A stretch of DNA of 64,000 nucleotides from contig JAAOMT010000003.1 of NCBI GenBank assembly GCA_016748015.1, positions 1,492,373-1,556,372 of the forward strand, written 5' to 3'. The stretch comes from Geosiphon pyriformis uo1. Its lineage: Eukaryota; Fungi; Glomeromycota. Of this stretch, positions 6,500 through 56,395 are shown one piece after another. Below the pieces are notes generated by a model that was not told where the DNA came from, did not search any database, and saw only the letters and a program-made list of their open reading frames with translations. Positions within the stretch are counted from its first letter, which is position 1; each line of letters starts with the position of its first letter. The translations under genes and the position numbers were made by a program.

Positions 6500-7954
6500 A
6501 TGATTCTCAATCATTTTTGGGAAAAAAAGAAAGGGTTCTTTGCAAGACAAATTATATTTCTTTTCATCCTTATTCTAGTTACTCTCGAAATTCTTATCAA
6601 TGAAGTCGAAAAATATTACTTAACTAGAGCAAAATTATCTGAAAATAGGTTAACCTGGTTAAATAATCAAGACTTTTCTTATTTGTGGCCAGCAACACTC
6701 CAAAATAATAAGACCTTAAGTAAACGTGAATTAATAGCAGCTGGCCCTTCAAGAGGTTTCGGTGGCAGCTCTAGAAAGAAATCCCCTCCTAAAACACTAG
6801 TTACTGATCCGGAGATTATAAATTTATTAAAAACAATGGCGTTGTGGGCAAATATGCCGTATTGCACTCCTAACCAGAAACTTGCAAAAGATTCCTTGGG
6901 ATTCATTTGTAAGAAATTTCTTTTTGAAGTTTGTAATTATTTGATTCAAGGAAATATTATTTTCAAAGCTTAAACTTTAATAATAAAATTTATTTTGCAA
7001 TGAAAAAGTTGATATTTCACAACAAACAATAGGAAAGAAGGAAGGAATCGTAATATATTTCCGTGGTAGGTTTAGTAAAACTTCTCATTGATTCACTATA
7101 ATTCAAGCTTCAATATTTTTTCTTTAAATTAAGGACCTGAACTTACTAGAAAGCAATGGAAGGCCAGAAAATTTAATTTAAAATCAGATCGTGGAAAAGA
7201 TGCTTGGCCAGTAGATTCCCAATGGTTTGACGTGGCCAAAAATGGAGCCTTGGAAGTATTGTCACAGCGAATTGTAAACCTTACTTCCGAGCTTACTGGT
7301 GATACACTGTTCACATACTTTACAGGCCATGGAATAGGAGGAGGTAATTTATATGCATTTTGTGTAAAAATATAACAAGGCAAATTAATTTTTATGTTTT
7401 TTGGATGATAGTATATGCCATATATTTAGCTATGTTAGCTGCAATGTGGGTAAAAGAAGATTTAATAGATCGAATAATACGAAATGGTAAAAAAATAGAT
7501 GTCACAGTTGTTACATTTGGACAACCAAGAGCGGGAAATTTTGATTTTGCACAGCGTGCAAATGCTTACATGAGGTCGAAATTTCTCAGAATTTATCGTG
7601 TGACTTACTCAAATGATCATGTGCCACAGCGACCATATTTAGAGTCGACTTCAAAGCCTTGGTTGCATACCGATCGAGAATATTGGATTTCATTGAATTG
7701 TGATTGTTCGCAAAAAAAAGAGCCTGAATATGAACTTTTTGAATGTCCAGGATATTCTAATACTGATTCTAAAAAATACGGAGAAAATAAGGTAATTCCC
7801 TCAAGGTATTTTTTTTCGAGAGTTTAACTTTATATTTATTTTCTGACAACTTTAATAGGAATGTAATCTTGGTACTGACGGTGCAAGTAACACAGCTAAT
7901 TATGGTCCATACTTTGGAATCACTTTTGGAAAATGCGATATGCTTTTCCATTAA
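6500..7954 (+). CDS. Secreted Lipase_3-fold protein, predicted catalytically dead (L1); exons 6500-6908, 7009-7065, 7134-7343, 7412-7791, 7859-7954
   Basis: Hydrophobic N-terminus, KR site, ANMPYC helix, IVIYFRG, FTGHGIGG (Gly at nucleophile, 7331-7333), VVTFGQPRAGN, RVTYSNDHVP, NCDC, terminal ANYGPYFGITFGKC (Asn at the catalytic His position). Open frame throughout. Confidence 0.88.
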
Positions 7955-10900
7955 TTTGATTTGTCTTAAAATCAAGTATTATGTAAGTGAGACGATTATC
8001 TAAAGAAGGTTCTAGAGTTATAATAACTTTATATTCTTATGAGAATCCTTTTCAATCTAATAGAATCTGATTTCATTTAAATATGTATCATTTTTACATT
8101 GACCCAAAAATTCAAATTTACAAAATAGAAATCGTATAAAAGCCAGTTGCAACACTATTTTAATTTATTCAATGAAATCAAAATTATTATTATAATGTAT
8201 GACGATTTTGAAAAAATTTTTATTGACATAAAACAGTGGTAATATTTGTTTTATATCGAACCAAGCCTTATGAAATTTTTGATATATTTATATATTAATT
8301 ATTTTAGCATAATAATGAAATACATTTTTAGAATTAAATTAATTTCTAATGCCGCCTCATTTAAAATTTATAATCGTCAAAAAGCTTTATTAACAATATC
8401 TTTATAAAATATTGTTAAAATAATGTTTTTTTTAATGTATTTTAATTCATTCAATAAGTAACATATATTTAAACAATTATTGTTATATTTACAAATTTAT
8501 TTTTATAAAATTTTGATATTTATAATAAAATTCAATATATAAGTTTTTCATTTAAATTAATAATTATTGAAATTTTTTAATTTTACAACAGATTTTAAAT
8601 TTAACTTTTGGAAAATAAATTGCTATTTAATAATACTAATTTTTAATAAAATGTTTAAAAAATTAAAAATAAATAACCTTTTTGTTAAAAATACTGTATT
8701 TTTTTTATTGTCTATTTAAAAATAGTTTTATATTATTAAATAAAATTTATATAATATATTTTTACATTATTCAAATTTCAAAAATAATATATTAATATAG
8801 TATTTTAAATTTGAATTATTATTTATGTTAACATATTCGAATATATTGATATTTTATAAATACAAATTTTTATTAATTGTAATTTCAATATGAATGTTAA
8901 AAATTTGATTTATATTAAAAATAACCACCCGAGTGGTTGGTTACGTGTAGAAAATGCATGATTCATGTCTATAGTAACTTTAATGTGACTAGTATAGTCA
9001 ATGGAAAGACCACATCTGTCAAAACAATAAAAAAATAAAATCACTGCAACTCAAATATATAAAGAAAATCAGTAAAAATTAAATAAAGCTCAAAATTTAA
9101 ATGACCTAAAATTTTAAATCTTTGGACCAAATTGCTTTCGCGTGAAAGAAATATTGAGCCTTGATAAAATTTGATAATTCTAACAAATAATGATACTATA
9201 TATATGCCCATATTTAATTTTCTCATAATTTATGTTTCACAATTGATTGCAATTTTAGAATCTTTTGAACCATTTTTTCTTCGATTTAATAAATCAAAGA
9301 ACCCTGATCCTAATTTCCAAGTACAGTTTCCTTTCTCCACTATCTTCTACTTTATCACTATTTATGGGGGAATTACTTCCCGTTCAAAAATTGCTTTCCG
9401 ACGCCCCGAAGGGGTCGTAAAGACGGGATATTGGTTTAGTTTGCAATTAGCAATAATCTAGCTTCGGATAAATCCTCACTAGCGTAGATAATGCCCGTGC
9501 ACAAAGATAAGGATAATTAATAGATTTATCCAATAATTTATAAGGATCGATGAAAAACCGGTTGGACTTCGTGAATTGTGGGATATTTTGGACAGGATTT
9601 TCATGAAATTATCTTTATTAGGAAGAAGAAAAATGGGACACCAACTGTAAATGGGGAAAACGCCACTAATTTTGTTTCGTATCAGGCCTGATGACTATTA
9701 GAATTTGTTTCCTAGAACAAAATATCCCAAGAATGAACAATGTATTTGAACGTAGATTTTCAATATTTATGTTGCTAAAATGCCATCTATTTATAATTAT
9801 ATCGGCAGATGCTGGGATGCAAAAGATTTCAAACATTAAACGTATTCAAGGTTTACTCTTACTAAATTAAAGCAATTAATGAATTCCCTGAACATGAAAA
9901 CCAAAGAAAGTTTTCAAATAATGGTCTCTAATTTTTAGAAAAATTTGAAGAAATGAGTTGGTTTACGTACAAACTTTAACTTAGTACACTTTCTCCAAAA
10001 AATTCAATTAAAAATACTTTAGTAAATAATATAAATAGGGAAATTTAAAATCAATTTTATCTATAAATAACGAGTATGGGATAGTTTGCAAGATTTTTAA
10101 ATTTACATATTCCATTTTCAAGAAGTCAATTTGCAATCTCCTTTAGGAATCTACTAATAATATTTCGAATTTAACCACTTTTTAAAGATTCCCCAATACT
10201 GAGTGAATTAAGGCTTTTAATTCTAATTGAAAGCCCGCCGCACAGCTTTACCAATTAAAAGAGAGTCTAAATTAATATAAAAATTTGATAATTATAACCA
10301 ATAAAGCTTTCAATTAAAAATTTTCATTTTCTGTTTGAATATTTTAAAACTCGATTGAAAAAGAGGAGGTGGAACATATATTGTATTGAATAAATTTGCA
10401 CCGATTATTTTTGATGACAAAATATAGTTTTCCTTAAACATTTCTTTCATCAGAAAACAAGAGCTTTTATTTTATTATGAAGTCATAGAATGACAGAGGT
10501 ATTTTCTTTGTGTAACTTTTCCACTGACAAACCTTCCCATTTTAGCTTGCTCGCAAGCGCGAGTATCTTTATGATGTAAACTATCCTCTCATGACTATTT
10601 CATGCACATAGAGATTCAAAAGATGGAGTCGTAACATTAAGACTTCCTGATATACATAAAAGGGAACATACCAATTACCGAGCCCGGAAATTTAAGGCTA
10701 AGTATTCATCGCCCTAAAAACTCGTAAACAATTGTTGAATGGTTACGGTAGGCTGCATTGGATATGAGGAGACTAAGGCCCTTTAGGGCGTTGTTTGATG
10801 ATAGCATAAAAGGATTCGGCGAGATGTTCCTGGATCATGTGTTAAATATGACTTTATTTTGAAATTAATTGATTTCATTATTGAAAATTTGCTATCATAA

Positions 10901-17390: not shown

Positions 17391-18911
17391 TTAAATTTTC
17401 GCCTTTTGTTTTTGACATTTTCCCATCGTAACCCCGAAATAAGGACCAACATGGTTTACTAATGAAGCATTTATCTGTGAATTTATGCATCCCTACATAA
17501 TATCATATGAATACAACTCAATCAACAAAGTTTTAGTTTATAGCTATCTGAACTCAAAAGCCTTGATATTCCAAAACACTTACATTACTTTCACCAAGCA
17601 TGAATGGACAGCTATATGCCTTTTGATTATCTTTTTCTTTTATCCAAATCTCCTTTCCAGGATGTTGATATTGTATTTCTATATTTTCCGCAGGATTTTC
17701 AAATTTAACTGGGTTTCGAGGAACATAATCATCTGCATAGGTCACTCGCCAAGTATTAACCATACTTTCAGCATATAAGACGAACTCCTGATTTCCAATA
17801 CGAGGCATTCCATATGTGTAGACATTTGTCACAATTGGTCTTGAAATAAGTTTGGTTTTTTGAATCGCTATAGCGGCTAGTAAGGCATAAACTGTATGAA
17901 AAAACCGAAGAAACTTGATTAGCTTCAAAAAAAAGTAAGAAAGAAATGAAATGAAACGAATAAAGCAATGCTTTTATCTTTCAATTACCACCACCCATGC
18001 TAAATCCAGTAAAATTAAAAGTATAGCCCTGGGTGAACTTTAACACTATGTTATTCAAAACATTTAATAAACTTTTTACGGCGGCAGGACTAAAACTCTC
18101 CGAAACTAATTTATTAATTTTCACATTTGCTTCTTGTTCAAATGGTACGAGATTTGTTTGATCATGAATGTATTTTTGGAGTTTTTTTTCATCTCCATAA
18201 AAGGCGATTGTAAGTACACCTTTTTCCACGGACGGTAATACGAGAACTTAAAAGCAACAGAATAAATTTTCAAACTTTAATTTACTTAGATGATTTAAAT
18301 TCTGAAAAACTGTGATTCTAACCTTTGATATTTTTGTTTATAGAAATTATTTTGCTGCTGCAAAAAACCTCGTTTGCAATTTGAGCATTTCTCTTTAGTA
18401 TCTTCAATAACTTGTCATCTTTTGAAATTGGCCGAGCATTCTCATCGAAAATAGGATTAATAAAATTTTCTGATATTGTTAAAGGTTCTAAAATATTGAA
18501 GTAATCTTTTGATATATTCTGCTGCTCAACTGGTAAATTTATATTTTGAAGGTTTAGAAGTGGAACTGTAAAATATGATGTAGATTCGGAAATACTGAAA
18601 TCATTTTCGTATGAATTTGGTGTTTCCGAATTCAGTATGTTGCTTGATGACAAGTGATCGTTAGGTAACTTGTTTTGGAAGATTTCTAATGCTAATTTAT
18701 TTTCATCTGATTCTTCATTAAAAATTTCGGAATCATTATTGAAGAGTGTCTCGGTCTTATTTTTGATTGAAAATAAAACTTCATTATAAAAGCTTGGGCT
18801 ATAGATATTTTCATCTCTTTCTGAATTCCTTTTATCGTTTTTTGTCATAGGAAAGGCGCCAGTTTTTAAAAATACTACTACCACCAATAATAACCATAGA
18901 CTGATTTCCAT
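17391..18911 (-). CDS. Secreted class 3 lipase with Ser-Asp-His retained (L2); exons 18911-18323, 18246-17989, 17891-17584, 17492-17391
   Basis: Signal peptide MEISLWLLLVVVVFLKTGA, long acidic pro-region, ANEVFC, FTGFSMGG (Ser at 17999-18001), YTYGMPRIGNQEF, RVTYADDYVP, NHVGPYFGVTMGKC. Intact frame. Confidence 0.9.
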
Positions 18912-19600
18912 CTTTATCAGTGTAAATCGAGAGGATTAAGAATTGATAGAATATCTGTTAGGATTTTCTCTTCCCAATCCTCGTTCCTATTTCAAGTTTT
19001 ATTTACAACTTTGCCATAATAATTCAAAACTATTCAGGAGATTGAAGATTAACTTGGCTCGAACTAATTAATGAGTTGATAGAAACGGCAAACGTTTAAG
19101 ATGTTTTTTTTTATTAATTACAAAACTTTATCAAATGAAGTAATTATTATTGAACGTTTCATAACTTATCAAATTATTAAGACTCACATTACCTGCATGA
19201 TTATTTAAAAGCCAAAGGGAAATACATGTACATAAAAATAAAAAAATTTTCCGAAATTTGTTTCGTGAACAAATCGACAAAATATTCAAACATCCGAAAA
19301 TCTTTGCCGATAGGAATTTAAAATGAATAACAGATAGAAAAAAACACTTATGAATTTGATAAATAAAAAACCTAGAAGAATGTTTTGCATGAAAATTAGA
19401 TGTTGAAGAAGCTGTGAATCTAATCAGGTTTTGTATTACTCATTAAATAATCTTGATTCATGATTTTTATCATATCGTTTAAATTATTTTTTTGAATTGA
19501 TTTTTTTCTTCAACTACATCTATTTGAATTTTAAATTACCATATTGCTAATTTTTTAGTTTTCGAATATTCGAAATTATAAAAAAAGACTCCTGGATTCT

Positions 19601-20956
19601 TTAAATAGGATATAAATTATGACATGTTCCAAAATATGGTCCATAATGTGCCGTGTTACTTTGTCCTTTCGTTGAAAGATTACAATCCTAAAAATAAAAG
19701 GACTAGTTTTTTGAGTTATCTAATTATTTCAGAAAAATTCTTCTCTTTCAAAAGAATATAATTTTTTTTTAAATATTACCACATTTTCAATAAATTCTTT
19801 ACTTCTTGTGCTTCAAGGGCATTCAAAAATTTCATAAGGCTCTTCGCTACTTGAATAAACCTGGCAGTCACAATTTTTTAGCTATCTAATACTCTGTCTC
19901 ATGATGCATAATCTTCAAGCGGAGCATAACTTCTCGTTGTTGTTGGGGAACGTGATCGTTTGTATGAGTGACGCGATATATAGGAAACAATTTGTTTATA
20001 AAATTAGCGTATTAATTATTAGCCATCCTTGGTTGACCAAAAGTGACGACAGTTACATCTAAGCTGTTTCCTGATTGATTTTTTGTTCTAAATTTAATAT
20101 TTAAAGATACTGAGAATGCCATCATTGCGAGTAAAACTGCATATACTGGATCAAAAAAATAAATAAAATGAAATTGAAATAGCAAGTAATATTTGTTTAA
20201 ACAAAAATATTTTAATTTTACCTCCACCAACTCCATGCCCAGTAAGAATTATTTTATAAAGTTTTTCCCTTTATATATTTGCTCAAATTGTTAATTCTTG
20301 CAATCATTCTATCCTTGATTTTATTAGTTTTCAGCCGTAGCCACTCAGAATCCACAGAGATTTCTTTGTAAGGTTCAAATTTTGTAAAAGAAAATTTTCT
20401 TGCATCCCATTGTTTCCTAGTCAATTCCTTTCCCCTCGCATATACAATTATCGCCTGTAATTCTTCATCTATCACTGCATCAGCTGATTCAAAAAATGAT
20501 TATTAACTTCCTGAAAGTGTCATTATGGTGGGTCTTGAAATAGAAATAAATATTTTAGAAAATACCTATATATTTTGGCTCGTCACCATCTATATAATAA
20601 TCTGAAAAGCAGTAAGCTCGGTTGGCATGATGCGCGATCATTTTTAAAAAACTTAAGGTTTCTACATTGGTGACCAATTTTTTGTTCGACAAATTTTTTA
20701 TACTTTTGCCAAACCCTCGTGATGGCCCCATAGCAGTTTTTCTTTCGTGAATTGGGGATGAATATGTGATTGAAGGGGAATTGTCCTAATCTTTTTATTC
20801 AAGAAATTTCGATTTGAATTTTTCTGTGAAATTTGGGTCTCGTTTGATTTCAAAGAAAAAACTCTTGTGCAGATTGTAAAATAATTAAATTTTTAAGAAA
20901 TATTAAAATGAATGTTGCGGTAACGATAAAAAACTTAAAAGAATCCAAAATTTCAT
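19601..20956 (-). pseudogene. Lipase_3-fold pseudogene, Gly-type (L3), close paralog of L1
   Basis: GPSRGFG..LVTN..ANRAYC, ELTRKQWDARKF, LTGHGVGG, VVTFGQPRMAN, NCDC, AHYGPYFG; several stops and frameshifts. Confidence 0.88.
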
Positions 20957-23597: not shown

Positions 23598-24985
23598 TTA
23601 AAAAGAAGGCATAGACGCGAAATTTGCGCAATCTCGGAAAGTTGTTTGAAAATATGGGCCATAATGAACTGATTCCCCCCTTCCATCAGTTCCGTAGTTG
23701 CAATCCTGTTATTATAAAATAAAATATCAAAAATGGTACTTCTCGCAAGCAAAACTTAAATAATTCTTACCATACTCTCTCCAACTCTGTCAAGATCATG
23801 ATTCTAAAACGCGGGACACACATACACTTGAAACTGGCCCGAATTTGTTTCATTTTTCATATATCCCTTATCATTTTCTGCAACAACTATACAATTGCAA
23901 TCTCTTGTAATCCAGTATTCAATTTCATAATTTTTGGTTGATGAGGGACATGATCATTTTCATGAGTTACCAGCAAAAATTTTATTTGGCTCCTATTGAG
24001 ATATTTTATAAATCTGATGTCTCCAATTTTCGGTTCACTAAATGTTACAACTGTCCAGTTGATTGTTTGATTTTTACTTATAGTGAGCGGAGTTGTTGAT
24101 GCTACTTGTGAAAACATCTTTCTGCATAAGTGCAGTCATTATTGCATATACTAAAAAGAAGTTTTTTTTTTGAAATAAAGCCTTGAAACTTTAGTGAAAA
24201 TCTAATTAAAAAGTTTTATCACAAATTGAAAATAAGCTACACCTCCCCCAATTCCATGTCCAGTCAAAATTATTGTAAGATCTTCATTTTCATTTTTTCC
24301 CTCGTAAAATCAAGAATCGCCTTTTCAACTCAAGATTTCATCCCAAATGATATGTTCCATCCTTCAGTATTCATCAAAGCACCCGGAGCTTTATCATTTT
24401 TCCCAAAATAGTGATAGATTAGGACGATGACGTTTCCATTCCTGGCGTGAAATTTTCTTGTATTTGCGAAGGAAATAATCATTTGACTACTCTTTGGAGG
24501 TTCTATGTAGTCAGCTATATCGTAAAGTGGAAAACCAAGAATATAAGGACGCTGTATATTTTTAATCAAAAAATTACTTGATCGATATTTAATCATAATG
24601 AGAATATCACAAAAATACTACATCGGAAATTCCTTTACCAATTCGATTATCTTGAGGAAAACAATAAGCACGATTAGCATAGGATGCCATTCTTTCAAAA
24701 AAAATTAAGATATTTGAGTCAGTCACTTCAAGTCTTGGGGGTGGAACTTTCCTTAAACCCCGAAAACTTTTCAAAACAAAATCTTTGGGATTGTATCTTG
24801 AATCGGAAAGAAGAATTGGATGTGATTCTTCTAACGATTTAGGAGAGTCAGACTTTTTATTATCAATTAACTTTTCTAAATTTTGTATTCGATCATTTAA
24901 TGAGATTCCCTCTTCATTAATAGCAATGAAGGTTTAAAATCTGTGAAAGCCTAATTTTATGTGGGATTATTTTCAGAGATCCATA
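23598..24985 (-). pseudogene. Lipase_3-fold pseudogene, Gly-type (L5)
   Basis: MASYANRAYC, LTGHGIGG (24253-24255), VVTFSEPKIG, VTHENDHVPHQP, YWITRDCNC, last exon DCNYGTDG..VHYGPYFQ; multiple frameshifts and stops. Confidence 0.87.
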
Positions 24986-34667: not shown

Positions 34668-34683
34668 GGGGGGGGGGGGGGGG
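34668..34683 (+). repeat. G16 homopolymer
   Basis: 16 consecutive G in very AT-rich DNA. Confidence 0.9.
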
Positions 34684-35139: not shown

Positions 35140-35560
35140 ACCTTTATGTTTGTTTTGAGATCATTCAAGTTCTCAGTCAAAGTAATAAGGCTTTTGCAGC
35201 CTCGCTGTCATCTGATGAGACACCATCCTTTCGGAGAGTTTAGAATATGAGGTTAATATCCTTGATACAAGGTCAGCCCAAAATATGGAATTAACTTTAT
35301 ATTTGACTCCGGTTAATAAGCTTTAAAAATTTTTAAAGCATAAACTGGGAGTAAAAACAAAAAAGTCCAAAATTGCATGTAAATTTTATAATTCAAGAAT
35401 CTTTTGGATAACTTACCTCCACCAAGACCATGACCCGTAAAATTTATCGTGCTACCCTCTTCCATATCATGAGTTACAACACTTTTGACCCAAGTTTTTG
35501 TTAATACTATCAGCTAGGCCCACGGTATCGAGCTAACTCGGTTTTTCTAAATATCCAATT
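35140..35560 (-). pseudogene. Lipase-family remnant, Gly-type (L9)
   Basis: STINFTGHGLGG|gtaagt at 35416-35450 with the family's conserved phase-1 intron; flanks degenerate. Confidence 0.75.
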
Positions 35561-39139: not shown

Positions 39140-42100
39140 TGAAAATAAATTTTTGCTTTAAAAGTATTTAACAAATCTTTATCTATTCAAGTTTTTATGC
39201 TAATTGCCAGAGTACTTTCGACAAGGTTAAAACTATTTATCTAAGTCAATCACGCGCTGGAGTATCAAGAGGAGACCGATCTTTGTACACTGCTTTGTCA
39301 GATTTCCATGACATTTGATTATGTTTTCGTCAGATAAGCTCTTATCTAGAAGATGTTCTTGGTGGCTGTCAAATATTGTGATACAAAATCCAAAATTGGC
39401 AGTTCGCGTGATAATAAATTTTGCTTTTGACTAATTCGCAAATCTTCTGAACGAAATTATTTTATTTTTAATCAGATAATAAACTAGGAACCCAACTTAT
39501 GCTGCTTGAAGAGCATAATGAATTCTTTTAATGATTTTGCTATGAAAGCTTTCAAAATTTTATGGAGAAAAAGAATTATCCCTCCAATATTTATATACTT
39601 TGCATTTCACATTCGGTCGCATGAAAATTTTGAAGGCTGGACAGTTTCTCATAAAGCTTTAAATATTCAAAATTTCTACAAACAGAATAAAAATCTCACT
39701 TCTCCCATCGTAGTTGATTGGAAAAATCAAAATATAGTCCCTTTCCATTTCAATCGAATCACAAAACGATCTCAATCGCTTCCTAAAACCTTGATGGATC
39801 CTGAAAAAAGTTTAATACCGGTTTATAAAAATTTGGCATACCTTGCGAATGACGCCTATTGCGATGCAATAAGTGACCCCATAAACGGTTTGATCTTTTT
39901 AGAATAAAACAATTGATTTAGGTCAACTTCATATTAAACAGTATTTTTAACCAATTGTCATTAATTTTTACTGTTTAGTCGATTACGGATTTCTCGAAAC
40001 CAAAACTGGTGGTGCGGCTTTAGTTGTGTACTTTGCAGGACCAGTAATTATTTGTCATTTCCTGAAATAGTATGTCAAAATCAAATTCACTAAATAGGAA
40101 TTTCTTGACTTTTTTTTAGAAAAGAAAAAAAATTTTCTGGCGCACTGAGATTGATAGACAAATTTTATTTCAAGTGAAAGGCTTCCCAACATTTGACGAT
40201 GATGCCCGTGTTAATAAACCGTTCTTGGAAATTATTGAATCCGTGTTTCCCAGCATTTTAGAGAAGATGCGGGAATTGCTAAAAATAAAGCCCGAGACGA
40301 GGCAAATTTTTTTCGTTGGACATGCTATTGGTGGAGGTTTGGGGAAACTAAGAAATTTTTTTTTAGTTTCAATAAGGGAAAATCTGAAATAATTTATATT
40401 CTGAATTATCAGCATACGCCTCAATCGCTGGTCTTCGATGGGCTATTCAAAGATATGAGATTACTCAATTAAATTTATGGCCTGAAATAAATATGGATGA
40501 AATGGGACAACATATTATCACATTTGGAGCTCCAAGAATTGGGAATAGCCGATTCAGTAGATTTGCAAATGGCGTGATTGACCATCATCGCATAACCCAT
40601 GGAAATGACCATGTACCACAATCTCCTTTGGATCCATTGAAGTGGAACCATTTTGGGTTTGAAATCTGGATTGAACCATTAGAAAATTGCGATTGTCCCG
40701 ATGATGCTAATTTTCATCGATATTCCTATTGGGATTGTAATAATCAAATTCTTCAAGGTACACAAAGACAAATATGGATTGAGAACTGGGCTAGTGAGAA
40801 TATGGTAAGTTTTATCCAAAGAAAATTTTTAAAACCGATAAAATTTGAAAGAATTTTCTCTTTAGGAGTGTAATAAAGGACAATCAATCATCAACGTTCC
40901 AGATGATTTGTTCCATGATGGGCCTTATTTCGACATTAGAATGGGTGTTTGTAGTTAAGTCATTTAGAAATTCTTGAAATTAAAATATTGACTTTATTTT
41001 TCAGATGAGTAACAGACCATCCAATAATGCGCGCAATTTTACTATATAAAATTTGTTTTTTAATATATTGTTTTTAGCGACCCATTTATGTATACATTTC
41101 GAATTTTAAGTCGTTCTTTCATTAAATAAAAAATTAAATAAAGACGAATCTGTTGTTATCAAAAATAACCTGCAGGTCCAATTTTAAGGTTGTTAGCATT
41201 AATGCGCTCTTTAAAATTCTTTGCAGTCTTAAGAAATTGTCCTAATTTTATGTCACTCGTCTGTTTATTGTGGCTTAATTCGCTATTTGAAAACAAAAAT
41301 TTTTATAAAAGTTTTCATCACATCTTGAAGAGAGAAAGAATATTGAAAAAATTCTTTCAAGAGCTTCATTATTCGTCTTGTAACATATTTTATATTTTTA
41401 AGCGTTGGAATTGATCTCCGATATAATTGCTTTGCGAATCAAGAAATTTATTTAGAAAGCAAGAATTATTTTTTAAATGTCCTACTTTAAAATGTTCTCA
41501 TTTGAAAATATTAATAATACTTGAATTTGTTTTTAGACATCAACCAGAGTTTTTTAATCGAGTTTAATAATATGACTCATAGGCCAGTTTGACCATGTTC
41601 TCAAAATTCATATCTTCACATCTTTGGTCATATGATGAGAAAATTAATGATAATATAAGCAAGAACATGTAAAATAAAAAAATTAGTTTTACGATTATGA
41701 AAACAAAATTTTATCGAATCTGACATTAAAATTATTCAAATTTTTTTAACATTAAAGCCACTGATAAAATGAAGGATGTTAAGCTAAAAACGTCTTTATT
41801 TATATTCTATTTGATGCTGCTGTTCACATGTTATCAATTTATATAACTCCCATCTCTTGACGCTGTTTATGTTTTATTATCAAAAAATAATTAATATATT
41901 TACCTTGGTCAAATGGAAGTTTTTCTAAAAATACATTTTACTAAATTTTCTTTGGCTTTAAGAAAGCAATCTTTTGTATCTTCCATCAATAATAAAGGCT
42001 ATATTTGATTTTAATAATAATAGAATTTAATAAACCTTAGAAAATCTCATAGAATAAGATTTCGTAAACGAACGAACAGCACTGTATCAAAAAACATAAA

Positions 42101-42620
42101 AAAGCTAAAAGGCCCCTAACAAATCTTATTCATCCTAAACTCACAGCAAGCAAATTAGAAATTCCTGCTGAAATTTTGCAAATATAGGTGCTGCTTATTG
42201 GATCAGATTTCAAATTTTGCCTATTGTTTGCCGTAAAATAATATTGGTAAATTTCTTTGAAGATAAAAATATTTTTAGGTAATTACTTAATTTCAAATTG
42301 AGATCTAAAAATGAATTAAACATTTTATATATTTTCTTGGTTGACTCAAAATCCTTCTTTCATAAGCGGATATTTTTACTAAAAACTTGGAAACTAACGG
42401 TTTATATTCACAAAAGAACAATGAGGCAAGATCAATTTATCGCACATCTTTAGAATGGGATAACAACAAGCTAGTTGGTGAAATTTGGTTGTAAAACATT
42501 CTTAAATGATGCCTTCCTTGGTCAGTAAACCGTTCAAGAAAATACTTCAATATAAAGATTCAAATTCCATTTTATTGAAAATGAAATTGGGGAGGTAGAT
42601 TTTCAGTTATTGATATTTCA
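39140..42620 (+). repeat. Direct segmental duplication, copy A (copy B ~52830-56395)
   Basis: Colinear similarity through the upstream region (caagaggagaccgatctttg), L11/L14, the intergenic region and L12/L15. Confidence 0.92.
39518..40958 (+). CDS. Secreted Lipase_3-fold protein, Ala-type predicted dead (L11); exons 39518-39887, 39979-40043, 40120-40336, 40413-40804, 40866-40958
   Basis: KR site, LANDAYC, VVYFAGP, FFVGHAIGG (Ala 40324-40326), ITFGAPRIGN, RITHGNDHVP, NCDC, FHDGPYFDIRMGVC. Intact frame. Confidence 0.9.
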
Positions 42621-43110
42621 GATAGATAAATATCACTTATTTAGAAAAAAGAATTATGGAAGCATATGCAATTCTAGCTGTCATGCAATCTAAATACATG
42701 GCGATACATCGGAGCGCCTCGAATTGGCAATTTAAACTTTGCAAAATTAGTCAACTGATTTTCAGCCCACATTCATCGAGTGACAAACGCCAATGATTGG
42801 TTATCACGAAAAATGATGCCTAAAGGGCTATTTTTACATTCCAAACCGGAATATTGGCAGGTAAGAGTAAATCAATGCTAATGCCAAGAATATTATATCA
42901 GATTAGGAAATTCATAGGAAGAACCCAGGGTGAGATTGATGAGAGTCAAGTAATATGTGAATTAAACTTATTTAATCAAAACATTTTCCTTGCTATATTT
43001 CCCAATCTTTCTATTAAAAAATTTCAGCTTTTTTAGACTTTTTCAGATTGTTTAACTTAATTTAGTCTTTTTAATTCATAATGTTCTATTCTGTTAGGAA
43101 CGTAGTTTAA
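41770..43110 (+). pseudogene. Lipase-family pseudogene (L12)
   Basis: Degenerate FTK.Q..ARSIY exon, eroded elbow (GAAAATGAAATTGGGGAG|gtag), AYAILA, IHRVTNANDW..HSKPEYWQ; many stops. Confidence 0.75.
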
Positions 43111-43129
43111 GAACAGTAGATTTGGAAAC

Positions 43130-45339: not shown

Positions 45340-45560
45340 TTTTTGTAAATCTGGAACAAGCATTTGAGCTATTATCAAATTCACCAGAAATTGAAAGTTT
45401 TAATGCACAATATAATTTTGTCTTCTGTTATCAAATGAATTGGAAGTAACTAAAAACTCTGAAAAAATTTGAACTCTATTAAAATTAATTTTTGAAATCT
45501 TAAAAAAATTTTCGCTTATTTTCTTTCAATGAAAAATTTACACATACAAATTTAATTTTC
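45340..45560 (+). pseudogene. Sel1-repeat remnant (related copies at ~48390-48665 + and ~61030-61240 -)
   Basis: AFELLSNSPEIESFNAQYNFVFCYQ..EVTKNSEK.FELY, a degenerate Sel1 consensus. Confidence 0.65.
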
Positions 45561-45569
45561 AAAGAAATA

Positions 45570-45820
45570 TATTGTGAATGTCCGGAAAGCGTCTACTCAC
45601 TTGTATATGGATGTTATAACATCTATCTATTGGATGAACATCCGGTATAAAATTCGAAAAATTATATATTTTCACTAAATGATAAGTATTTAATATAAAC
45701 ATCTAGCCAATTTTTAGGAATACAATGCTCGTAATTACGAGTTTGACTTTAAAAGAGAGTCAAGTTATTTCGGAAAACCAAATGACCTTCGCTATGGTCC
45801 ATATTTTGAAATTCCGTGAA
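45570..45820 (+). pseudogene. 3' two-exon fragment of a lipase-family gene
   Basis: ECPES..DEHP|gt...ag|EYNA..DLRYGPYFEIP*, matching the family's final intron and GPYF terminus. Confidence 0.7.
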
Positions 45821-46835
45821 TTTCAGAAAATTTAACTGGCAAGAAGAGGTTTATTAATTAAATATCTTATGCATTTAATTTGTTTTCTTGTTATAAGTTT
45901 TTTTAAGGTTTTTTACTTCTGTTATCTGTTAATTTGTTACTCCAACCTGTGACATAAAAATAGTGCTTTTTGTAAGAGTGTCAAATTTTAATTTATTATT
46001 TTTTATATGAGCAATTGCACATTTTCGAAACAAAAACCTGAAATGCATTTTCTTGGCTATTTATTTACTTTTTAAATTAAAGTTTATATTGAAATAATAA
46101 AAAACAATTAAATCAAGTAATTGTTTTCGTATTATAATTTTTTATTAAATATCGCTTCACTTTAATTATCTGAATTATTAAATTTATATCTGGATAATTA
46201 CTGGCCAATTATCTGAATTATCTTTAATGACAAAAAACAAAGTTTTTATTATTGAACTAATTTAAAGCGAATAAAAAAATGTAGCCTTTTTCCAAAAACC
46301 ATTAAACTTGTATAATATTATCATTAAATGATAAAAGTATTGACTATTGCAAAAAAAAAGAGAAGGTTTTTATTTTTGTTTAAGCTGTAAAGATTAAGTT
46401 TGTACAATAAAAGTAATTACATTCATAATGTTAAAAAAAATTATCAAAAATTTGATTTGCTATAACTAATGATAATATTTTAATTATTTAAAATCTTATT
46501 TATGAATATTTTGCGAAATACAAATTATTAATAATTTATGAGTTATAATTTGCAGGTCATTTTACAACTTAAAAACAATTTCAATATTATATGATCGCAA
46601 ATGAGTTGTTACATTTGAAGAAAAATAATATTTGTTTTTTTTAACCAATGTATTTTATTTATTTTTGGCGAGATATTCGAATTACGCCATTTTTTTTCGT
46701 GTTCAGTTTCTTCTGTGGGCAACCGTACAGTTAATTCAACTTCGGATTAATGGGAGTAATCTAGAACAGGTTTTCGATTTTTGTACATTTCCTTTGGAGT
46801 AAACTGAGCCTGAGGATCACCACAACTTGCCGAGC

Positions 46836-47648
46836 TCAAATAAACGTATGGTCTATCTTTCTCTCCTTTTTGATGACCTTTTCGTTTTCGAGGTTAGCCA
46901 GCTGAATCTTGGCATTAAGATCATCACCCGCTGCAGCTTTCTTGTACCAATATAATGCCCGTTTATAGTCCTTTTTTGTACCCTGTGCCTCTCGAAAGCA
47001 CTCGGCCAAATTAAATTGAGCACAGGGAAGACCAGCCATGGCTGCTGTTTGATACCAATAGAAAGCTTTGACAGAATTTTGCCGAGTACCTAATCCTGAT
47101 TTGTAAAAGCATCCGACGTTATTTTGGGCACCTAAGTGACCAGATTCAGCTGATCTAAGAAACCATTCTAATGATTTTTCCATATCCACAGTGGTTCCTA
47201 TTCCATGATGATAACACCTTGCAAGCCGATATTGAGCATGTCCATTACCATCATTCGCAGACATCCGATACAATTTGAAAGCTCTTTCTGGGTCTTTTTC
47301 CACGGCAAATTCAGTCTCGAAACAGATTCCAAGGAATAAATGACCATATGAGTAACCATTATCGGAGGCAACCTCGTAAGCTTCAAATGCCTTTATCGGA
47401 TCAAAACATTCCTTGATATACTGATGACAGAATCCTAGGAGGCATCTAAACTGTCGAACGTACTGTGTTCTAATCGTGAGTTTTTCAATTAGAGATTCCA
47501 GTGAAAGGTTATGACTTTCAAGCTGGTTTTGGATATCAAGCGCGATATCACAATAAGTTACCCCACGATTGATCGAGTCAAGGAAACTTTTTGCGATCTG
47601 GTTGAATGGACCATTGGTATAATTTTCTGGATGGAGATTTGAAATCAT
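46836..47648 (-). CDS. Sel1-like repeat protein (270 aa, intronless)
   Basis: Tandem AQY.LA.CY..G.GT..D..KA..WY..AA..G repeats. A 1-nt deletion relative to the paralog shortens the C-terminal tail. Confidence 0.93.
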   Translation of the reverse strand: MISNLHPENYTNGPFNQIAKSFLDSINRGVTYCDIALDIQNQLESHNLSLESLIEKLTIRTQYVRQFRCLLGFCHQYIKECFDPIKAFEAYEVASDNGYSYGHLFLGICFETEFAVEKDPERAFKLYRMSANDGNGHAQYRLARCYHHGIGTTVDMEKSLEWFLRSAESGHLGAQNNVGCFYKSGLGTRQNSVKAFYWYQTAAMAGLPCAQFNLAECFREAQGTKKDYKRALYWYKKAAAGDDLNAKIQLANLENEKVIKKERKIDHTFI

Positions 47649-48299
47649 TTGAATTTGATGGATTTTTTGTTATTATTAAGATTTGATGATTTTTGGTTTT
47701 CGTTTTATTATTGAAATTACGGCTTTTTTGTTATCATTTGAATCTAAAAAATCAACTATATTTATAGAGGATTCTTAATAATTCCTAAATAGGCGCGTAA
47801 ATAATGAAAAGGTACAAGATCCAAGTTGCTGGAGACAGTGAGAAAATTGTCTATTTTCGGTTAGATGTTTCTTTGTAACGTTGTAGATCTCGGGGTCAAA
47901 ATTATTAAAATTGTTGCAGCTGGGTTGAGATAAAGCTTAATTTTTGAGCACAATTTTTACAGGAGTAAAATGATGATCATACAACAGATATGTTTTGATA
48001 CTTTATTACCAAAAAGATTTATATTTAATCTTGATAACAGATTGTATTTTTAAAATAATCCTCTACCCATTAAAAAATGTCAATGGGTGTAACTATTTTT
48101 AGAAATTTGGTTCATATTCTAACGTTGCGGGGCCTAGACTTTTCGACAATATGATTTAGATTATAAATCCTTTTTTTCTATAATATTACTTTAATAAGCA
48201 ATCAGATTATCTAAGCACTAATAAAGTTGACGATAAGGGGGAGAGCTATTAACTGCTTTGTTTTTTGTTTTTCATTTCTTGAGAACTAGTCTGTAATTA

Positions 48300-50240: not shown

Positions 50241-53218
50241 TCATGCTCCTTATAATTGTGGAAATATAAATGACCTTCTGTATTAACATTATTGTATAGA
50301 AACCTTAAAAAAACATGCTTTTTCTTGCTGTGAGAATTTTAGACCTGCCAATCTAATAGCCGAGTTGGAAGGGGTTTTTTAAATTAAGCAATCTTTTCTG
50401 CAAAGATATAAGCGATATTTTTAGAGGATCTCAATGAAAAAATGATATCTAGCGGTCATTGTAAGCTGGAAAGAAAGAGGAATTATTCATTCAAAGTTAT
50501 CAATTTTTGCAAAAGCACGAGATTAAGCAATTTAAAAGAAAGTTTAGAACTGGAAAAAGTTTCTTTAACAGGTGTTTGGATATATAGAAGGACAATAAAG
50601 TCAGAAATTTAATTGTTCATGAGCTTTTTGCTGAAACTCCGGATGATTTGCCAAATTTTCAATAGGCCAATATACGTTAATTGCCACAATTTCCTAAAAA
50701 ATATAATGCAAGTGGAAAATCTTTACACACAGTTTAATCATGTCCAATTTTAATCACGTCCAATTCATCAATTAACCCTTCAAGAATCTTGTGCAACACA
50801 GTTTCTTTCTACATCATTTTCGACCTTTTCATAAGATTCGACTTTTCATTGTGTTAAAAAACTGTGCGCTTTGAAGGTAAAACTTAAATAGTACCTAAGA
50901 AAAATGTTATTTAAAAGCAAAAATTTGTTTTCTAACCTAACGTCTTTATGTTTCTATAGGATTCACATTTCAATTTATTGATAAAATTATTAATTTCGAA
51001 ATAGTTGTAAACTTTTAGATAAAAAAAAGTCCCGTTTTTGAAGATAATTGAATGCTTAGGACCAAAATGAATTATGAAAATATCACAACACATTTTAATC
51101 CATTTTAACACATCTGTGAACAATTAATGTGTATTGAGTAATTTCAATGTAAATTTAATAAACGTGAAATTAAAAAATAATACAACCTTTTTATACATAT
51201 CTTTTTCCTGCAAAAAATGCGTCCAAAAATAAAAAGTGGAAAAAAACCTTTTGCATGTACATATTAAAAAAAATAAAATAATCACATTAAATATTTATAT
51301 TTTTACAACATAAAATATTACTCATGTATGTAAATAAAATTTGGTATTTACTTTTGTAAAAATTAAAAGTATTTTTTTTTAAACATACCAGCATCAGCAT
51401 TTGGTTAAACTTTTTTTTTTTTAAAAGAATTTTTTATTTTTTTACATAAATATATGTTTGAATTTGTCAAAAAAAAAAATTTGTTTTAAACCAAGTTTTT
51501 ATTAAGGGTTTTTTATAATTAATTCATCGAGTGCTTACAAAAGTAAACTAACAGAGTTTTAGTTAGAAAAAAGTTAAAACAGCATTAAAAATATATATAA
51601 AAATAGAATTGATATTAAAATAAAAAAAAGAGTTATTAATAAAAAAGTTATATATATACTTTTTAATAAATTATAATATTAATAGATTGCAATCTATAAT
51701 GTAATTTAAAAAAATAATTAATTTAATAATTAATGAATCAACTAAAGAATAATGATGCATTTATAAATAAATTAAATGAATAAAAAATTGATAATTTTGA
51801 CGAATATATTACTTTATTGCTCATTATATATTCTCTGAACTTCTTTTGGCTATTTTATTTACATATATATATTTTATTGTTCTTTTCCCTAATTTTTTAG
51901 AGTTTATATTTGATTGTAAAAATAAAATATGCGTTTTTTTTTGCATTTCATATTCTCTTATTTTAAAAAAGTAATAAATTTGGCATCCCATTTTCTCTAC
52001 TAAAGCTTGAAATTTTGTAAATAAAATTTTTTGAAAAGACAGTGTTGACAAAAACAAATTTTTATTAATTTATTTTATGTAAATCGGTAAGTTCATAATT
52101 GTTTTTATAACTAAAAGCAATTTTCTCAAATCGGACATAACAAAATGCAACTTTTATTTAAAAATAAAAAGCACCAATATTGTTTTTCTCCAATTCCAAA
52201 TGTTAATTAACAAATTTTAATTTTTTTACTTCATAATTTAAATAATATTGAACTTTCAAATTTATATAGTATTTTATTCAATGACTTAATATTTTAACTG
52301 TTCTTAGTTTGAAGTTTTTCAACAATTTATTTTTTTTCTCATATTATTTATTTATTATTATTACTTAAGTAAACTTCAATAATACCTGGTTTTGTTCATA
52401 CTATGGGTACAACATGTCTTATTATATATTGTGTACATTGTTGGGAAATATGATGTTTTAGAGCAATTTATCAGATGTGTTAACTATGTTATTTTTATTA
52501 TTTCTTATATTAATTGACTTTAAATAGCCATAGCAATTAAATATGACATATTAAATTTATCTTAATAGCTGATGGCTAATTAATTTATTATGAATGTGTA
52601 CTAAAATTGATTTTTTCATCTGCTACATTAATTGAAAGAGAAAATCTGTTTCAAAGATTTTGAACCTATTAAATCAACTTTTTTTTTAGATCAAAAAATC
52701 TAATTTTACTCGAGAGCATCCGAATGACAATATTATGATATACAAAAATTATTACTGGATTCTGGATATTTTTGGCAATTCACGTATCAACCCCTTCTTT
52801 GGATATAAGGTTCTTTCTGTCTTTCAAACGGAAAAATAAATTTTACTTAGAAAGTATTAACAAGTCTTTATTCATTCAGAGTTTTTTTGCTAGTTGCTAG
52901 GGCACTTTCCACAAGGTTATAACTATTTATCTAAGTCAATGATGTGCTGAAGTGTCAAGAGGAGACCGATCTTTGCACACTGCTTTGTCAGAAATTCAGC
53001 AAGATTTCCATGGCATTTGATTATGTTTTCAAGGATTTTGCATAAGGAAGGCTCTTATTTAGAAGATCTTCTTGTTGGGTGTTTTAGATTTTGGTATAAA
53101 ATCCAAAAATGGCAGTTCGCGTGATAATACAAAAATAAATACATAAATAAGTTTGATTTTGGCGGATTTCTTATTTATCTCGAAACATAATAAACCGCCG
53201 ACAAAAAATTAGGAACCC

Positions 53219-54673
53219 ATGTTATGGTGTTTGAAGAGCATAATGAATTCTTTTAAAGATTATGCCATAAAAACTTTCAAAATTTTGTCAAGAAAAGAAA
53301 TTTTCGTCTCATTATTTATATACGTTGCATTTCACTTTTGGGCGCATGAAAATTCTAAAGGCTGGATAGTTTCTCATAAACCTCTACAAATTCAAAATCT
53401 CTTTAAACAAGATGGAAATCTCACCTTTCATATCGTAGTTGATTGGAAAAATCAAATGAGAGTTCCTTTCCAATTCAAACGAATCACCAAACGATCTCAA
53501 TCGCTTCCTAAAATTTTAATAGATCCTGAAAGATCTTTTTTACCACTTTATAAAGAGTTGGCATACTTTGCAAATAATGCCTATTGCAATTTAGAAAATG
53601 GATTTATAAACGGTTTGATCCTTTTAGAATAAAACAATTGATTTAGGTCAAAAACTATTTTTTGCTATTTATCTTAAATTTTTACTCTTCAGTTGAATTC
53701 GGATTTTTCTCAAGTACAGGCTTTGATACGGCTCTCGTTGTGTACTTTGCAGGATCAGTAATTATTTGTCATTTCCTGAAATAACATGTCAGAATCAAAT
53801 TCACTAAAAAGGACTTTCTTTATTTCTTTCTTAGAAAATAAATAAATCTTCCTGGCCTAATGTGATTGATAGGCAAATTTCATTTCAAGTGAAAGGCTTC
53901 CCAATATTTGACGATGCTCGTGTTAGTAAACCATTCTGGGAAACTACTCAATCGGTGTTTCCCAGAATTTTAGAAAATATTCGGGAATTTTTAAAAACAA
54001 ATCCAAAGACGACGCAAATTTTTTTCACTGGGCATGCTATTGGTGGAGGTTTGTGAAACTAGGAAATTTTTTTTAGTTTCGATAAGTAAAAATCTGAAAT
54101 ACTTTTATATTTCTGAAATACCAGCATATGCCTCAATAGCTGGTATCCAATGGGCTATTCAAAGATATGAGATTAATCAATCGAAGTTATGGCCTGAAAT
54201 AGATCTGAATAAAATTGGTCACCATATTATCACATTTGGAGCTCCGAGAATCGGGAATAGCCGATTCAGTAGATTTGCAAATAACGCCATTAGACATCAT
54301 CGCATAACTCATGGAAATGACCATGTCCCACACTTTCCTTCGGATCCATTAAAGTGGAACCATTTTGGGTTTGAAATCTGGATTGAGCCATTAGAAAATT
54401 GCAATTGTCCCGATGATGATGTTAATTTTTATCCATATTCCTATTGGGACTGTAATAATCAATTCCTTGAACAAACCCAAAGACAAATATGGCTTGAGAA
54501 ATCGACTAGTGAGAATATGGTAAGTTTTATCCAAAGAAAATTTTTAAAACCGATAAAATTTGAAAGAATTTTCTCTTTAGGAGTGTAATAAAGGACAATC
54601 AATCATCAACGTTCCAGATGATTTGTTCCATGATGGGCCTTATTTCGACATTAGAATGGGTGTTTGTAGTTAA
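53219..54673 (+). CDS. Secreted Lipase_3-fold protein, Ala-type predicted dead (L14), paralog of L11
   Basis: KR site, FANNAYC, VVYFAGS, FFTGHAIGG (Ala 54036-54038), ITFGAPRIGN, RITHGNDHVP, NCNC, FHDGPYFDIRMGVC. Five exons, intact frame. Confidence 0.9.
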
Positions 54674-55518
54674 GTCATTTAGAAATTCTTGAGATTAAAA
54701 TATTGACTTTATTTTTCAGTTGAGTAACAGACCATCCAACAATGCGCGCAATTTTACTATATAAAATTTGTTTTTTAATATATTGTTTTTGGCGACCCAT
54801 TTATGTATACATTTCAAATTTTAAGTCGCTCTTTAATTAAATAATAAATTAAATAAAGACGAATCTGTTGTTATCAAAAATAACCTGCAGGTCCAATTTT
54901 AAGGTTGTTAGCATTAATGCGCTCTTTAAAATTCTTTGCAGTCTTAAGAAATTGCCCTAATTTTATGTCACCCGTCTGTTTATTGTGGCTTAAATTCACT
55001 ATTTGAAACACAAAATATTATAAAAATTTTCATCACATCTTGAAGAGAGTAAGAATATCAAAAAAATCCTTTCAAGAGCTTCAATATTCGTCTTGTAACA
55101 TATTTTATATTTTTAAGCGTTGGAATTGATCTCGATATAAATGCTTAGTGAATCAAGAAAATTATTTAGAAGCAAGAATTCTTTTAAATGTCTTACTTTA
55201 AAATGTTCTCATTTGAAAATATTAATAATACTTGAATTTGTTTTTAGAAATCAACCAGAAGTTTTTAATCGAGTTTAAATAAGGTGACTCATAGGCCAGT
55301 TTGACCATGTTCTCAAAATCCTCACATCTTTGGTCATATGATGAGAAAAATAATGTTAATATAAACAAGATCATGTAAAATATAAAAATTAGGTTTACGA
55401 TTATGAGATTTTTTTGAACAAGACTCTTCTAACAATGGAAAATAAAGATATTAAGAACATTTAATCGAATCCGACAATAAAATTATTTAAATTTTTTAAC
55501 TTTAAAGCCACCGATAAA

Positions 55519-56395
55519 ATGAAGGATAGTAAGATAAAAGAGTCTTTATTTATATTTGATCCTGGTGTTCGCTCACTATTAAAAGAATTAGCCTAAAATG
55601 AATATAAGACCATCTCATGTGATCAATTTATATAACTCCCATCTCTTGAAGCTGTTAATGTTTTTTTATCAGAAAATAATTTATATATTTACCTTGGTCA
55701 AACGAGAATTTTTCTAAAATCTATTTTACTAAATTTTATTGATTTTAAGAAATGAATCTTTTGTATCTTACATCAATAATAAAGGCTATATCTGGTTTTA
55801 ATAATGATAAAATTTAATAAACCTTAGAAAATCCCATAGAATCTCATTTCTAAAAACGAAAACAGAAAAAGCTAAAAGGTCCATAAAAAATTTTATTCAT
55901 CCTAAACTCACTGCAAAAAAATTAGAAATTCATGCTGAAACTTTAAAAATATATCTGAGGCGTATGAATCAGATATCAAATTTTGCCTATTGTTTGCCGT
56001 AAAATGATATTACCAAAGTTTTTTGAGGATAAAATATTTTTGGTAATTCCTTAATTTCAAATTGTGATTTAAAAATGAATTAAACATCTTATATATTTTC
56101 TTAATTGACTCGAATATTTTTACTAAAAACTTGGAAACTACCGGAGCCGTTGTTTATTTCCGAGAGCCTATATTCACAAAAGGACAATGGAGTGCAAGAC
56201 CAATTTATCACACATATTTAGAATGGGATAACAACACGCTATTTGGTGAAATTTTGATGCAACATATTCCTAAAATGATGCCCTTCTTGGTCAGTAAACT
56301 GCTCAAGAAAATACTTCAATAAAAAGATTCAAAATTCATTTGTTAAACATGGAATTGGAGGAGGTAAATTTTCGCGTTATTGCTATGTCAGATTA
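55519..56395 (+). pseudogene. Lipase-family pseudogene, Gly-type, 3'-truncated (L15), paralog of L12
   Basis: AVVYFREPIFTKGQWSARPIY and KHGIGG|gtaaat at 56345-56368; stops upstream. Confidence 0.78.

Follow-up and report, generated by a model that had tools for sequence, protein, structure and literature searches.

Introduction

The closest described relatives of the genes analyzed here are the class 3 lipases (PF01764) of the fungi Thermomyces lanuginosus, Rhizomucor miehei and Rhizopus. The window that we studied, that is, the whole of a 64,000-nucleotide stretch of DNA from Geosiphon pyriformis uo1 (assembly GCA_016748015.1, contig JAAOMT010000003.1, positions 1,492,373 to 1,556,372 of the forward strand), carries a tandem array of lipase-like genes in which most nucleophile elbows lack serine (Ser). 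Geosiphon pyriformis is a member of the Glomeromycotina that hosts intracellular Nostoc cyanobacteria and is not arbuscular mycorrhizal. An earlier sequence-only reading of this stretch had framed the array in terms of arbuscular mycorrhizal fungi, which proved to be wrong given that the partner is Nostoc and no plant is involved.

The Geosiphon family has in common with the fungal lipases the fold, a disulfide-rich, probably secreted architecture and the order of the motifs, namely FRG, G-H-x-x-G-G, T/S-F/Y-G-x-P-R-x-G-N, N-D-x-V-P and H-x-x-E-Y-W-I, with Asp and, judged by its motif, His equivalently placed. It differs from them in the Gly or Ala that occupies the nucleophile position in about 87% of the strictly defined elbows, in the Pro or Lys that follows FRG, in a His motif that is one residue longer (H-x-G-P-Y-F), in the hundreds of paralogs present in one genome and in the long N-terminal linkers of many copies.

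The use of a class 3 lipase-like domain without catalysis, with some or all of the triad either dispensable or gone, would also link the Geosiphon family to the plant proteins EDS1, PAD4 and SAG101, to which the family profile shows a remote match (1e-7 to 1e-5). Compared to the EDS1 family, which has three members, the Geosiphon proteins number in the hundreds, contain no EP domain, are predicted to be extracytoplasmic with conserved cysteines and are nearer to the fungal lipases. In the neuroligins and other non-catalytic adhesion proteins of the cholinesterase-like kind, an extracellular alpha/beta-hydrolase fold carries Gly in place of the nucleophile Ser and acts by binding. Unlike the Geosiphon family, these proteins belong to the carboxylesterase type B branch, are metazoan and have few paralogs. 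Finally, the RALPHs, RNase-like effector candidates of the obligate biotroph Blumeria graminis, are a very large, lineage-specific and fast-diverging family of secreted pseudoenzymes (PMC6464244). Here, as in the Geosiphon family, the enzyme fold is kept and the catalytic residues are lost (PMC6464244), but the RALPHs have an RNase T1-like fold and a plant host; a role of the Geosiphon family in symbiosis is conjecture. Non-catalytic relatives are already known among the alpha/beta-hydrolases, and the part that appears to be new is a lineage-specific expansion of Ser-less class 3 domains to several hundred genes. The full-text literature that we searched yielded no description of the family or of such an expansion, although the Geosiphon genome paper may mention it.

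Loss of the nucleophile serine in the array

A six-frame motif scan of the window returned exactly the 12 elbows that the sequence-only reading had listed, and no others of that form (Table 1). Nine of the 12 lack Ser, with Gly in seven and Ala in two. The earlier numbering of the lipase-like copies ran to 14, whereas we count 13. Window copies are denoted below as L1, L2, L6, L8 to L11 and L14; three-digit identifiers (L005, L011, L026, L039) refer to other genomic loci, and P-numbers to database proteins.

Exon models, obtained by enumeration of junctions and comparison with database proteins, gave open spliced frames of 377, 410, 378 and 378 codons for the Ser-less copies L1, L10, L11 and L14, respectively. 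As previously noticed, these four copies retain TFGxPR, the Asp of ND/DD-x-VP, the cysteines and a GPYF end. What had been described as a GPYF terminus is H-x-GPYF (H-x-G-P-Y-F-G in the last exon), the site of the catalytic His. This His is present in L2, L6, L9, L10, L11 and L14 as well as in both broken full-length copies, and is absent from L8. In L1, the position is occupied by Asn (N-Y-GPYF), and the frame is nonetheless open.

In every copy, the elbow motif lies at the end of an exon, as had been proposed, and is followed by a phase-1 intron (G/GT ... AG/CN, with slashes at the junctions). The spliced sequence reads G-H-G-x-G-G-A/V, with the Ala or Val that normally follows GG in class 3 lipases, and the NCBI protein models of the window and of related genes have the same elbow as our exon models. 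Because the intron restores the expected residue and the NCBI models agree, the missing Ser is no splicing artefact. An intron starting within the elbow itself, such as one from a GTATTG donor in L10, was considered and rejected on the same grounds, a canonical donor being found after the motif in every copy.

Intron positions differ within the family. In L8, a single 5' exon of 328 codons (31263-32249, + strand) begins with the start codon and covers everything up to the elbow, introns 1 and 2 being absent, whereas in L10, intron 2 is lost and exons 2 and 3 are fused (36493-36786, - strand). The L8 5' open reading frame had no Pfam match. L2 combines a signal-like N-terminus and a long linker rich in Ser, Asn and Glu with F-Y-G-D in place of FRG-T/S.

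Family size and distribution

The Ser-less elbows extend far beyond the window. Collecting PF01764 matches across the 128-Mb genome, a check suggested by the sequence-only reading, yielded 783 candidates at first look. Under a strict DNA pattern (G-H-x-[LIVMF]-G-G followed by a G/GT donor), the genome contains 228 elbows with Gly, 39 with Ala, 33 with Ser encoded by AGY and seven with Ser encoded by TCN; reversed patterns, used as controls, gave zero in every case, so that the number of elbows is beyond chance. At least 267 strict elbows (87% of the strict total) are Ser-less, compared to 40 with Ser. We examined 40 of the 115 regions around PF01764 matches at the exon level, and outside the window approximately 40 of 58 elbows were Ser-less, nearly all of these accompanied by a full-length, uninterrupted exon 4.

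Protein databases present a consistent picture. A profile search had 4093 matches at E <=0.001 among 1.84 billion cluster representatives, and the elbows among the top 150 representatives comprised 111 with Gly, 15 with Ala, three with Asp and 25 with Ser. All Ser-less proteins whose names were looked up (26, together with those listed by two homolog searches) are Geosiphon proteins named 'hypothetical protein' in singleton clusters; the multi-domain Ser types come from insects and other fungi. Searches for homologous proteins with a profile and with a region as query returned Geosiphon proteins only, with few candidates, which is weak evidence on absence elsewhere; the ESM Atlas contained generic Lipase_3 clusters only. 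Judged from these database sequences, the family is restricted to Geosiphon among the proteins looked up. The public record of these genes, for which the sequence-only reading had expected the label of lipase, consists of 'hypothetical protein' and a PF01764 match and nothing more.

Public Geosiphon models often merge two or three adjacent lipase-like genes, as in P0066 (1149 amino acids), P0004 (1286 amino acids), P0001 and P0002. Because neighboring genes are fused in this manner, protein-based counts of the family are too low.

Asp (GHD-x-GG) or Cys (GHCVGG) rarely occupies the nucleophile position (loci L039 and L005; proteins P0021, P0102 and P0118). Asp and Cys serve as nucleophiles in other alpha/beta-hydrolases.

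A quick tree of the family was poorly resolved: nine changes between Ser and non-Ser are needed, of which only two are forced by starred branches, and gain versus loss is left unassigned. The three Ser-bearing copies of the window sit on very long branches. At one locus outside the window (L026:2063-6747, G000:C590:296431-305512), a single GHSLGG copy clusters with two GHGLGG neighbors with a value of 99 in the Shimodaira-Hasegawa-like approximate likelihood ratio test (SH-aLRT). It is the clearest case of a recent Ser/Gly switch within one local array, and the sole well-supported one in the quick tree.

Fold, key residues and predicted export

Single exons from the window identify the domain. 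Against a PF01764 cut-off of 22 bits, exon 4 scored 43.5 bits in L1, 40.7 in L2, 22.4 in L9 and 46.6 in L10, and a single exon of L11 also exceeded the cut-off (range over L1, L2 and L9 to L11, 22.4-46.6 bits). Precomputed Pfam results for the database members of the family contain PF01764 and no other domain. The family profile, built from 39 Ser-less proteins, matched the lipases of Thermomyces, Rhizopus and Rhizomucor (1e-31 to 1e-26) and paired Thermomyces Ser146 with Gly and Asp201 with Asp.

Structure prediction, which the earlier reading had proposed, points in the same direction. An AlphaFold2 model of L11 (P0009 residues 1-370, with 50 family sequences) had a mean predicted local distance difference test score (pLDDT) of 79.6; the core, from residue 80 onward, reached approximately 87-98, and the N-terminal 80 residues were poorly defined. 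With this model as the query, the best Foldseek matches were the Rhizopus and Rhizomucor lipases (E 2e-13, target-normalized template modelling score 0.64-0.72) and feruloyl esterase A.

Key columns were examined in 50 family proteins with a mean column identity of only 18%. The catalytic Asp (N-D-x-V-P) is present in all 50, as well as in 7/7 exon-4 pieces from the window, and the catalytic His is present in 43 of 46; about 9% of the relatives have Asn at this site with open frames. The equivalence of this residue with His258 is based on the position of the motif and on the presence of the same H-x-GPYF motif in canonical Geosiphon lipases (FRGT, GHSLGG), given that the profile alignment to the PDB sequences ended before the His. 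The glycines of the elbow and the His that precedes the nucleophile are about 95-98% conserved, and eight cysteines are conserved in the family. True lipases have the oxyanion Ser or Thr directly behind F-[RK]-G; at this position, the family has Pro (20), Lys (10) or other residues, and never the Thr of canonical Geosiphon lipases. The Ser-bearing copies L2, L6 and L9 have Asp there. Among the columns conserved at >=90%, the only Ser, Cys and Thr are those also kept in true lipases. Block by block, conservation is highest in the elbow, TFGxPRxGN, ND-x-VP, EYWI and the His tail, and lowest at the N-terminus, in the lid-side part that separates FRG from the elbow, and in the loop that follows the elbow helix. 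The proteins end approximately 10 residues past H-x-GPYF, and no C-terminal EP domain is present.

All eight open copies begin with a short charged stretch followed by a hydrophobic segment about 11-24 residues long, and AlphaFold2 places helices, albeit at low confidence, at residues 2-9 and 15-26 of the L11 N-terminus. In L2, L6, L8 and L9, 150-250 residues that are rich in Ser, Asn, Glu and Asp, and probably disordered, separate the hydrophobic segment from the lipase domain; the N-terminal parts of L1, L10, L11 and L14 are much shorter. Because of the N-terminal hydrophobic segment, the acidic or Ser-rich linkers and the conserved cysteines, the domain is probably extracytoplasmic, either secreted or anchored.

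Selection on the Ser-less copies

The claim that the Ser-less copies constitute a maintained family is supported by several observations, among them the retention of the fold, the Asp and the cysteines. Most paralogs are less than 50% identical, with saturated synonymous divergence (dS), and yet have full open exons and the same motifs; frames remain open at approximately 30% pairwise identity. All 19 sampled Ser codons are AGY, whereas Gly is encoded by GGA (21), GGT (16), GGG (6) and GGC (1). Because all four Gly codons are in use, Gly has been held through synonymous drift. Ser and Gly are separated by one transition, and the rare Ala, Asp and Cys codons are each one step from GGT.

We compared nonsynonymous divergence (dN) with dS in locus-level alignments, using the pairwise Nei-Gojobori method (NG86; 95% confidence intervals in parentheses). 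For L10 and two paralogs at L011, 10 kb upstream of the window, dN/dS was 0.41 (0.31-0.54) and 0.50 (0.37-0.67), with a ratio of dN to intron divergence of about 0.4. For L1 and its L011 paralog, the respective values were 0.57 (0.38-0.81) and 0.64, and for L11 and L14, 0.65 (0.46-0.94) and about 1. Thus, a dN/dS near 1, which the sequence-only reading had named, alongside missing expression, as the sign of simple decay, was not found: the pairwise estimates range from 0.41 to 0.65, and all upper limits are below 1.

The pair L11/L14, the youngest, provides an additional comparison. When the 174 observed substitutions were placed randomly on L11 in a neutral simulation, the frame stayed open in 0.02% of the cases, with a mean of 8.9 stops. 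The gaps in the exons of this pair are all 3-base and in-frame, whereas those in the introns are of 1, 4 and 11 bases. As an internal control, the 82% identical block that carries L11 and L14 also holds a neighboring lipase copy, of which one duplicate has a broken version and the other a truncated one. On this evidence, selection on the family is real but modest. The diversification that had also been claimed is supported only in the sense of very high divergence and variable lid-side blocks, not of positive selection.

The two genes are not uniformly diverged. At 40805-41158 (L11) and 54520-54873 (L14), intron 4 and exon 5 are 100% identical and the next 200 bases are 96% identical, and elsewhere in the genes identity is 71-90%. 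This identical 3' end looks like a recent gene-conversion tract.

Discussion

Taken as a whole, the explanation that we favor, with little more than even confidence, is a birth-and-death array of a Ser-less lipase-fold family that binds ligands non-hydrolytically in the old groove. Under this model, the family would derive from class 3 lipases of the Mucoromycota type (Rhizomucor/Thermomyces), in which an early mutation would have turned the AGY codon of the nucleophile Ser into a GGN codon for Gly. The family would then have expanded massively by tandem and segmental duplication, with some copies later moving on to Ala, Asp or Cys. Gly fits well into the strained turn of the elbow, which the products retain together with the alpha/beta-hydrolase core, the disulfide cysteines, the Asp and, in most cases, the His; the nucleophile Ser and the oxyanion Ser/Thr after FRG are lost. 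The ligand, plausibly an acyl chain or a lipid, would be bound in the former active-site groove, and variation on the lid side would set the specificity.

Because both the nucleophile and the oxyanion Ser/Thr are lost, the family proteins are most likely not ester hydrolases, as far as sequence allows this to be judged. Non-hydrolytic binding is the best reading that we infer; with conservation highest around the pocket and variation highest on the lid side, the sequences fit a repertoire of binding proteins that differ in specificity. Because a search of the genome turned up no fatty acid synthase I domains, a lipid is a plausible ligand, although this is a weak negative result in that the positive control gave no match either.

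Several observations weigh against this explanation. Five of the nine Ser-less elbows of the window (those at 20232, 24253, 35427 and 56351, and that of L8) are in broken, relic, truncated or doubtful copies, from which it follows that the array evolves by birth and death. In L11/L14, dN roughly equals the divergence of the introns and the differences are spread almost evenly over the three codon positions, indicating weak constraint beyond an open frame. Ser-less copies keep Asp and His almost without exception, which the sequence-only reading had not noticed; a purely inert scaffold would not need this much, and it fits retained chemistry. Furthermore, NG86 estimates of dN/dS are rough in a genome with 28% GC, export was judged by eye from the N-terminal hydrophobic segments, and the distribution restricted to Geosiphon rests on protein databases, not on the DNA of other Archaeosporales genomes.

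The best surviving alternative, which we nevertheless regard as rather unlikely, is that the Ser-less proteins are still enzymes that use the Asp-His dyad as a general base in the space left by Gly or that catalyze a non-hydrolytic reaction. Nucleophile-less enzymes with the alpha/beta-hydrolase fold exist, for example, tomato methylketone synthase 1 (Ala-His-Asn) and the cofactor-free dioxygenases that employ a His-Asp dyad. The retention of Asp in 50/50 and of His in 43/46 of these highly divergent proteins, the location of the strongest conservation in the elbow, Asp and His blocks, and the rare GHD elbows with Asp at the nucleophile site all fit such enzymes. The loss of the oxyanion Ser/Thr and the lack of a new Ser, Cys or Thr among the >=90% columns argue for the opposite conclusion, as do L1 and the approximately 9% of relatives that have Asn at the His site and are still open. 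Moreover, Asp and His may be kept merely to hold the C-terminal loop.

Unlikely, too, and somewhat more so, is a hypervariable repertoire for surface recognition, or of effectors or decoys, directed at proteins or cell-surface molecules (of Nostoc, other microbes, or in self/non-self recognition), in which the fold would be a stable secreted scaffold that binds no lipid, much as in the RALPHs of powdery mildew (PMC6464244). Hundreds of fast-diverging arrayed paralogs whose core is conserved while lid-side and loop blocks vary, export-like N-terminal segments with conserved cysteines, and the relatively high dN/dS of 0.4-0.65 in recent pairs are all compatible with this possibility. However, conservation is strongest in the blocks around the old active site and not on the outer face, positive selection is not demonstrated, and there is no known partner.

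It is highly doubtful that the family is largely functionless, a dead lipase multiplied by segmental duplication with frames open only through youth: the five broken, truncated or doubtful Ser-less copies of the window, the dN of L11/L14 and the location of the arrays among duplicated segments and transposon relics fit such decay, but not the full open exons and motifs of paralogs less than 50% identical with saturated dS, the 0.02% open frames in the simulation of even the youngest pair, the Gly kept through synonymous codon drift, or the dN of 0.4 of intron divergence in older pairs.

Automated pipelines will count the Ser-less genes as lipases and thereby inflate the apparent lipolytic capacity of Geosiphon. 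Because fatty acid synthase is apparently missing from the host, which has an intracellular cyanobacterium, a large, predicted-exported family with a conserved putative acyl-binding groove becomes an obvious candidate for obtaining lipid or recognizing the partner. With Asp and His strictly retained but Ser gone, the family is also a natural test case for a leftover dyad in a pseudoenzyme. More speculatively, the family could be a several-hundred-member repertoire for lipid or acyl capture, transport or sensing at the interface between Nostoc and a fatty-acid-auxotrophic fungal host, or else a new class of Gly-His-Asp non-hydrolytic enzymes. We consider such an outcome improbable; if true, it would offer a direct molecular handle on the lipid supply of Geosiphon from the cyanobacterium.

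Gene copies and other features of the window

The lipase-like copies are interspersed with other genes and with two segmental duplications (Table 1). The direct duplication carries L11 and its broken neighbor in one unit, and L14 and the truncated neighbor in the other.

Table 1. Lipase-like copies, nucleophile elbows (six-frame scan), long linkers, duplications and neighboring genes, in window coordinates
Feature	Position	Strand	Remarks
L1, intact, Ser-less	6500-7954	+	5 exons: 6500-6908, 7009-7065, 7134-7343, 7430-7791, 7859-7954; hand and scripted splice models
L2, intact, Ser	17391-18911	-	Open frame of 418 codons; 99% identical to P0027
Broken Ser-less copy	19579-20700	-	All exons recognizable; frameshifts before elbow, in-frame stops in exon 4; exon-4 hidden Markov model (HMM) match split by stop
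Broken Ser-less copy	23601-24800	-	Frame changes in elbow exon and exon 4; exon-4 match partial, HMM positions 15-64
L6, open gene, Ser, Asp and His	25490-27067	-	First-exon junction provisional; 99% identical to part of fused model P0066
L8, Ser-less, doubtful	31263-32790	+	3' part demands two short non-consensus introns; no His; exon-4 match ends at HMM position 68
L9, intact, Ser, Asp and His	33058-34609	+	Open frame of 440 codons; long N-terminal linker; 99% identical to P0063
Relic, lone elbow exon	35316-35513	-	Without exon 4 or tail
L10, intact, Ser-less, Asp and His	35840-37329	-	4 exons; two alternative intron-1 donors possible
L11, intact, Ser-less, Asp and His	39518-40958	+	5 exons; 99.7% identical to P0009
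Broken copy adjoining L11	42024-42878	+	Elbow destroyed; exon-4 remnants spread over several frames
L14, intact, Ser-less, Asp and His	53243-54673	+	L11 paralog; intron 4 and exon 5 same as in L11
Truncated 5' fragment (KHGIGG)	55811-56431	+	Copy of broken 42024-42878 gene; ends where duplicated block ends
Elbow GHGIGG	7325-7342	+	Ser-less
Elbow GFSMGG	17990-18007	-	Ser present
Elbow GHGVGG	20223-20240	-	Ser-less
Elbow GHGIGG	24244-24261	-	Ser-less
Elbow GHSIGA	26053-26070	-	Ser present
Elbow GHGLGG	32169-32186	+	Ser-less
Elbow GHSLGS	34064-34081	+	Ser present
Elbow GHGLGG	35418-35435	-	Ser-less
Elbow GHGIGG	36499-36516	-	Ser-less
Elbow GHAIGG	40318-40335	+	Ser-less
Elbow GHAIGG	54030-54047	+	Ser-less
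Elbow KHGIGG	56345-56362	+	Ser-less
Region of L2 with long linker	18323-18911	-	
Region of L6 with long linker	26654-27067	-	
Region of L8 with long linker	31263-31900	+	
Region of L9 with long linker	33058-33796	+	
Segmental duplication, direct, ~3.5 kb	39142-42623 vs 52833-56393		82% identity, window self-BLAST
Segmental duplication, inverted	45347-48162 vs 61210-58581		~82% identity; carries Sel1-repeat genes
Sel1-repeat gene	46836-47648	-	In inverted duplication
Sel1-repeat gene	59146-60045	+	In inverted duplication
Tyrosine kinase-like (TKL-like) Tyr/Ser-Thr protein kinase gene	29010-30507	-	PF07714, E 7e-28; between lipase copies

Within the inverted duplication, two short open stretches (45718-45816, + strand, and 60844-60960, - strand) end in R-Y-G-P-Y-F-E, resembling the lipase tail without its His. 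The 3' ends of the Sel1-repeat genes are about 1 kb away from them, and no other lipase exon is found near them. Farther along, at 61500-62300 on the - strand, open fragments contain a motif that, by eye, resembles a Tc1/mariner transposase (...NAPIHTAKDV...).

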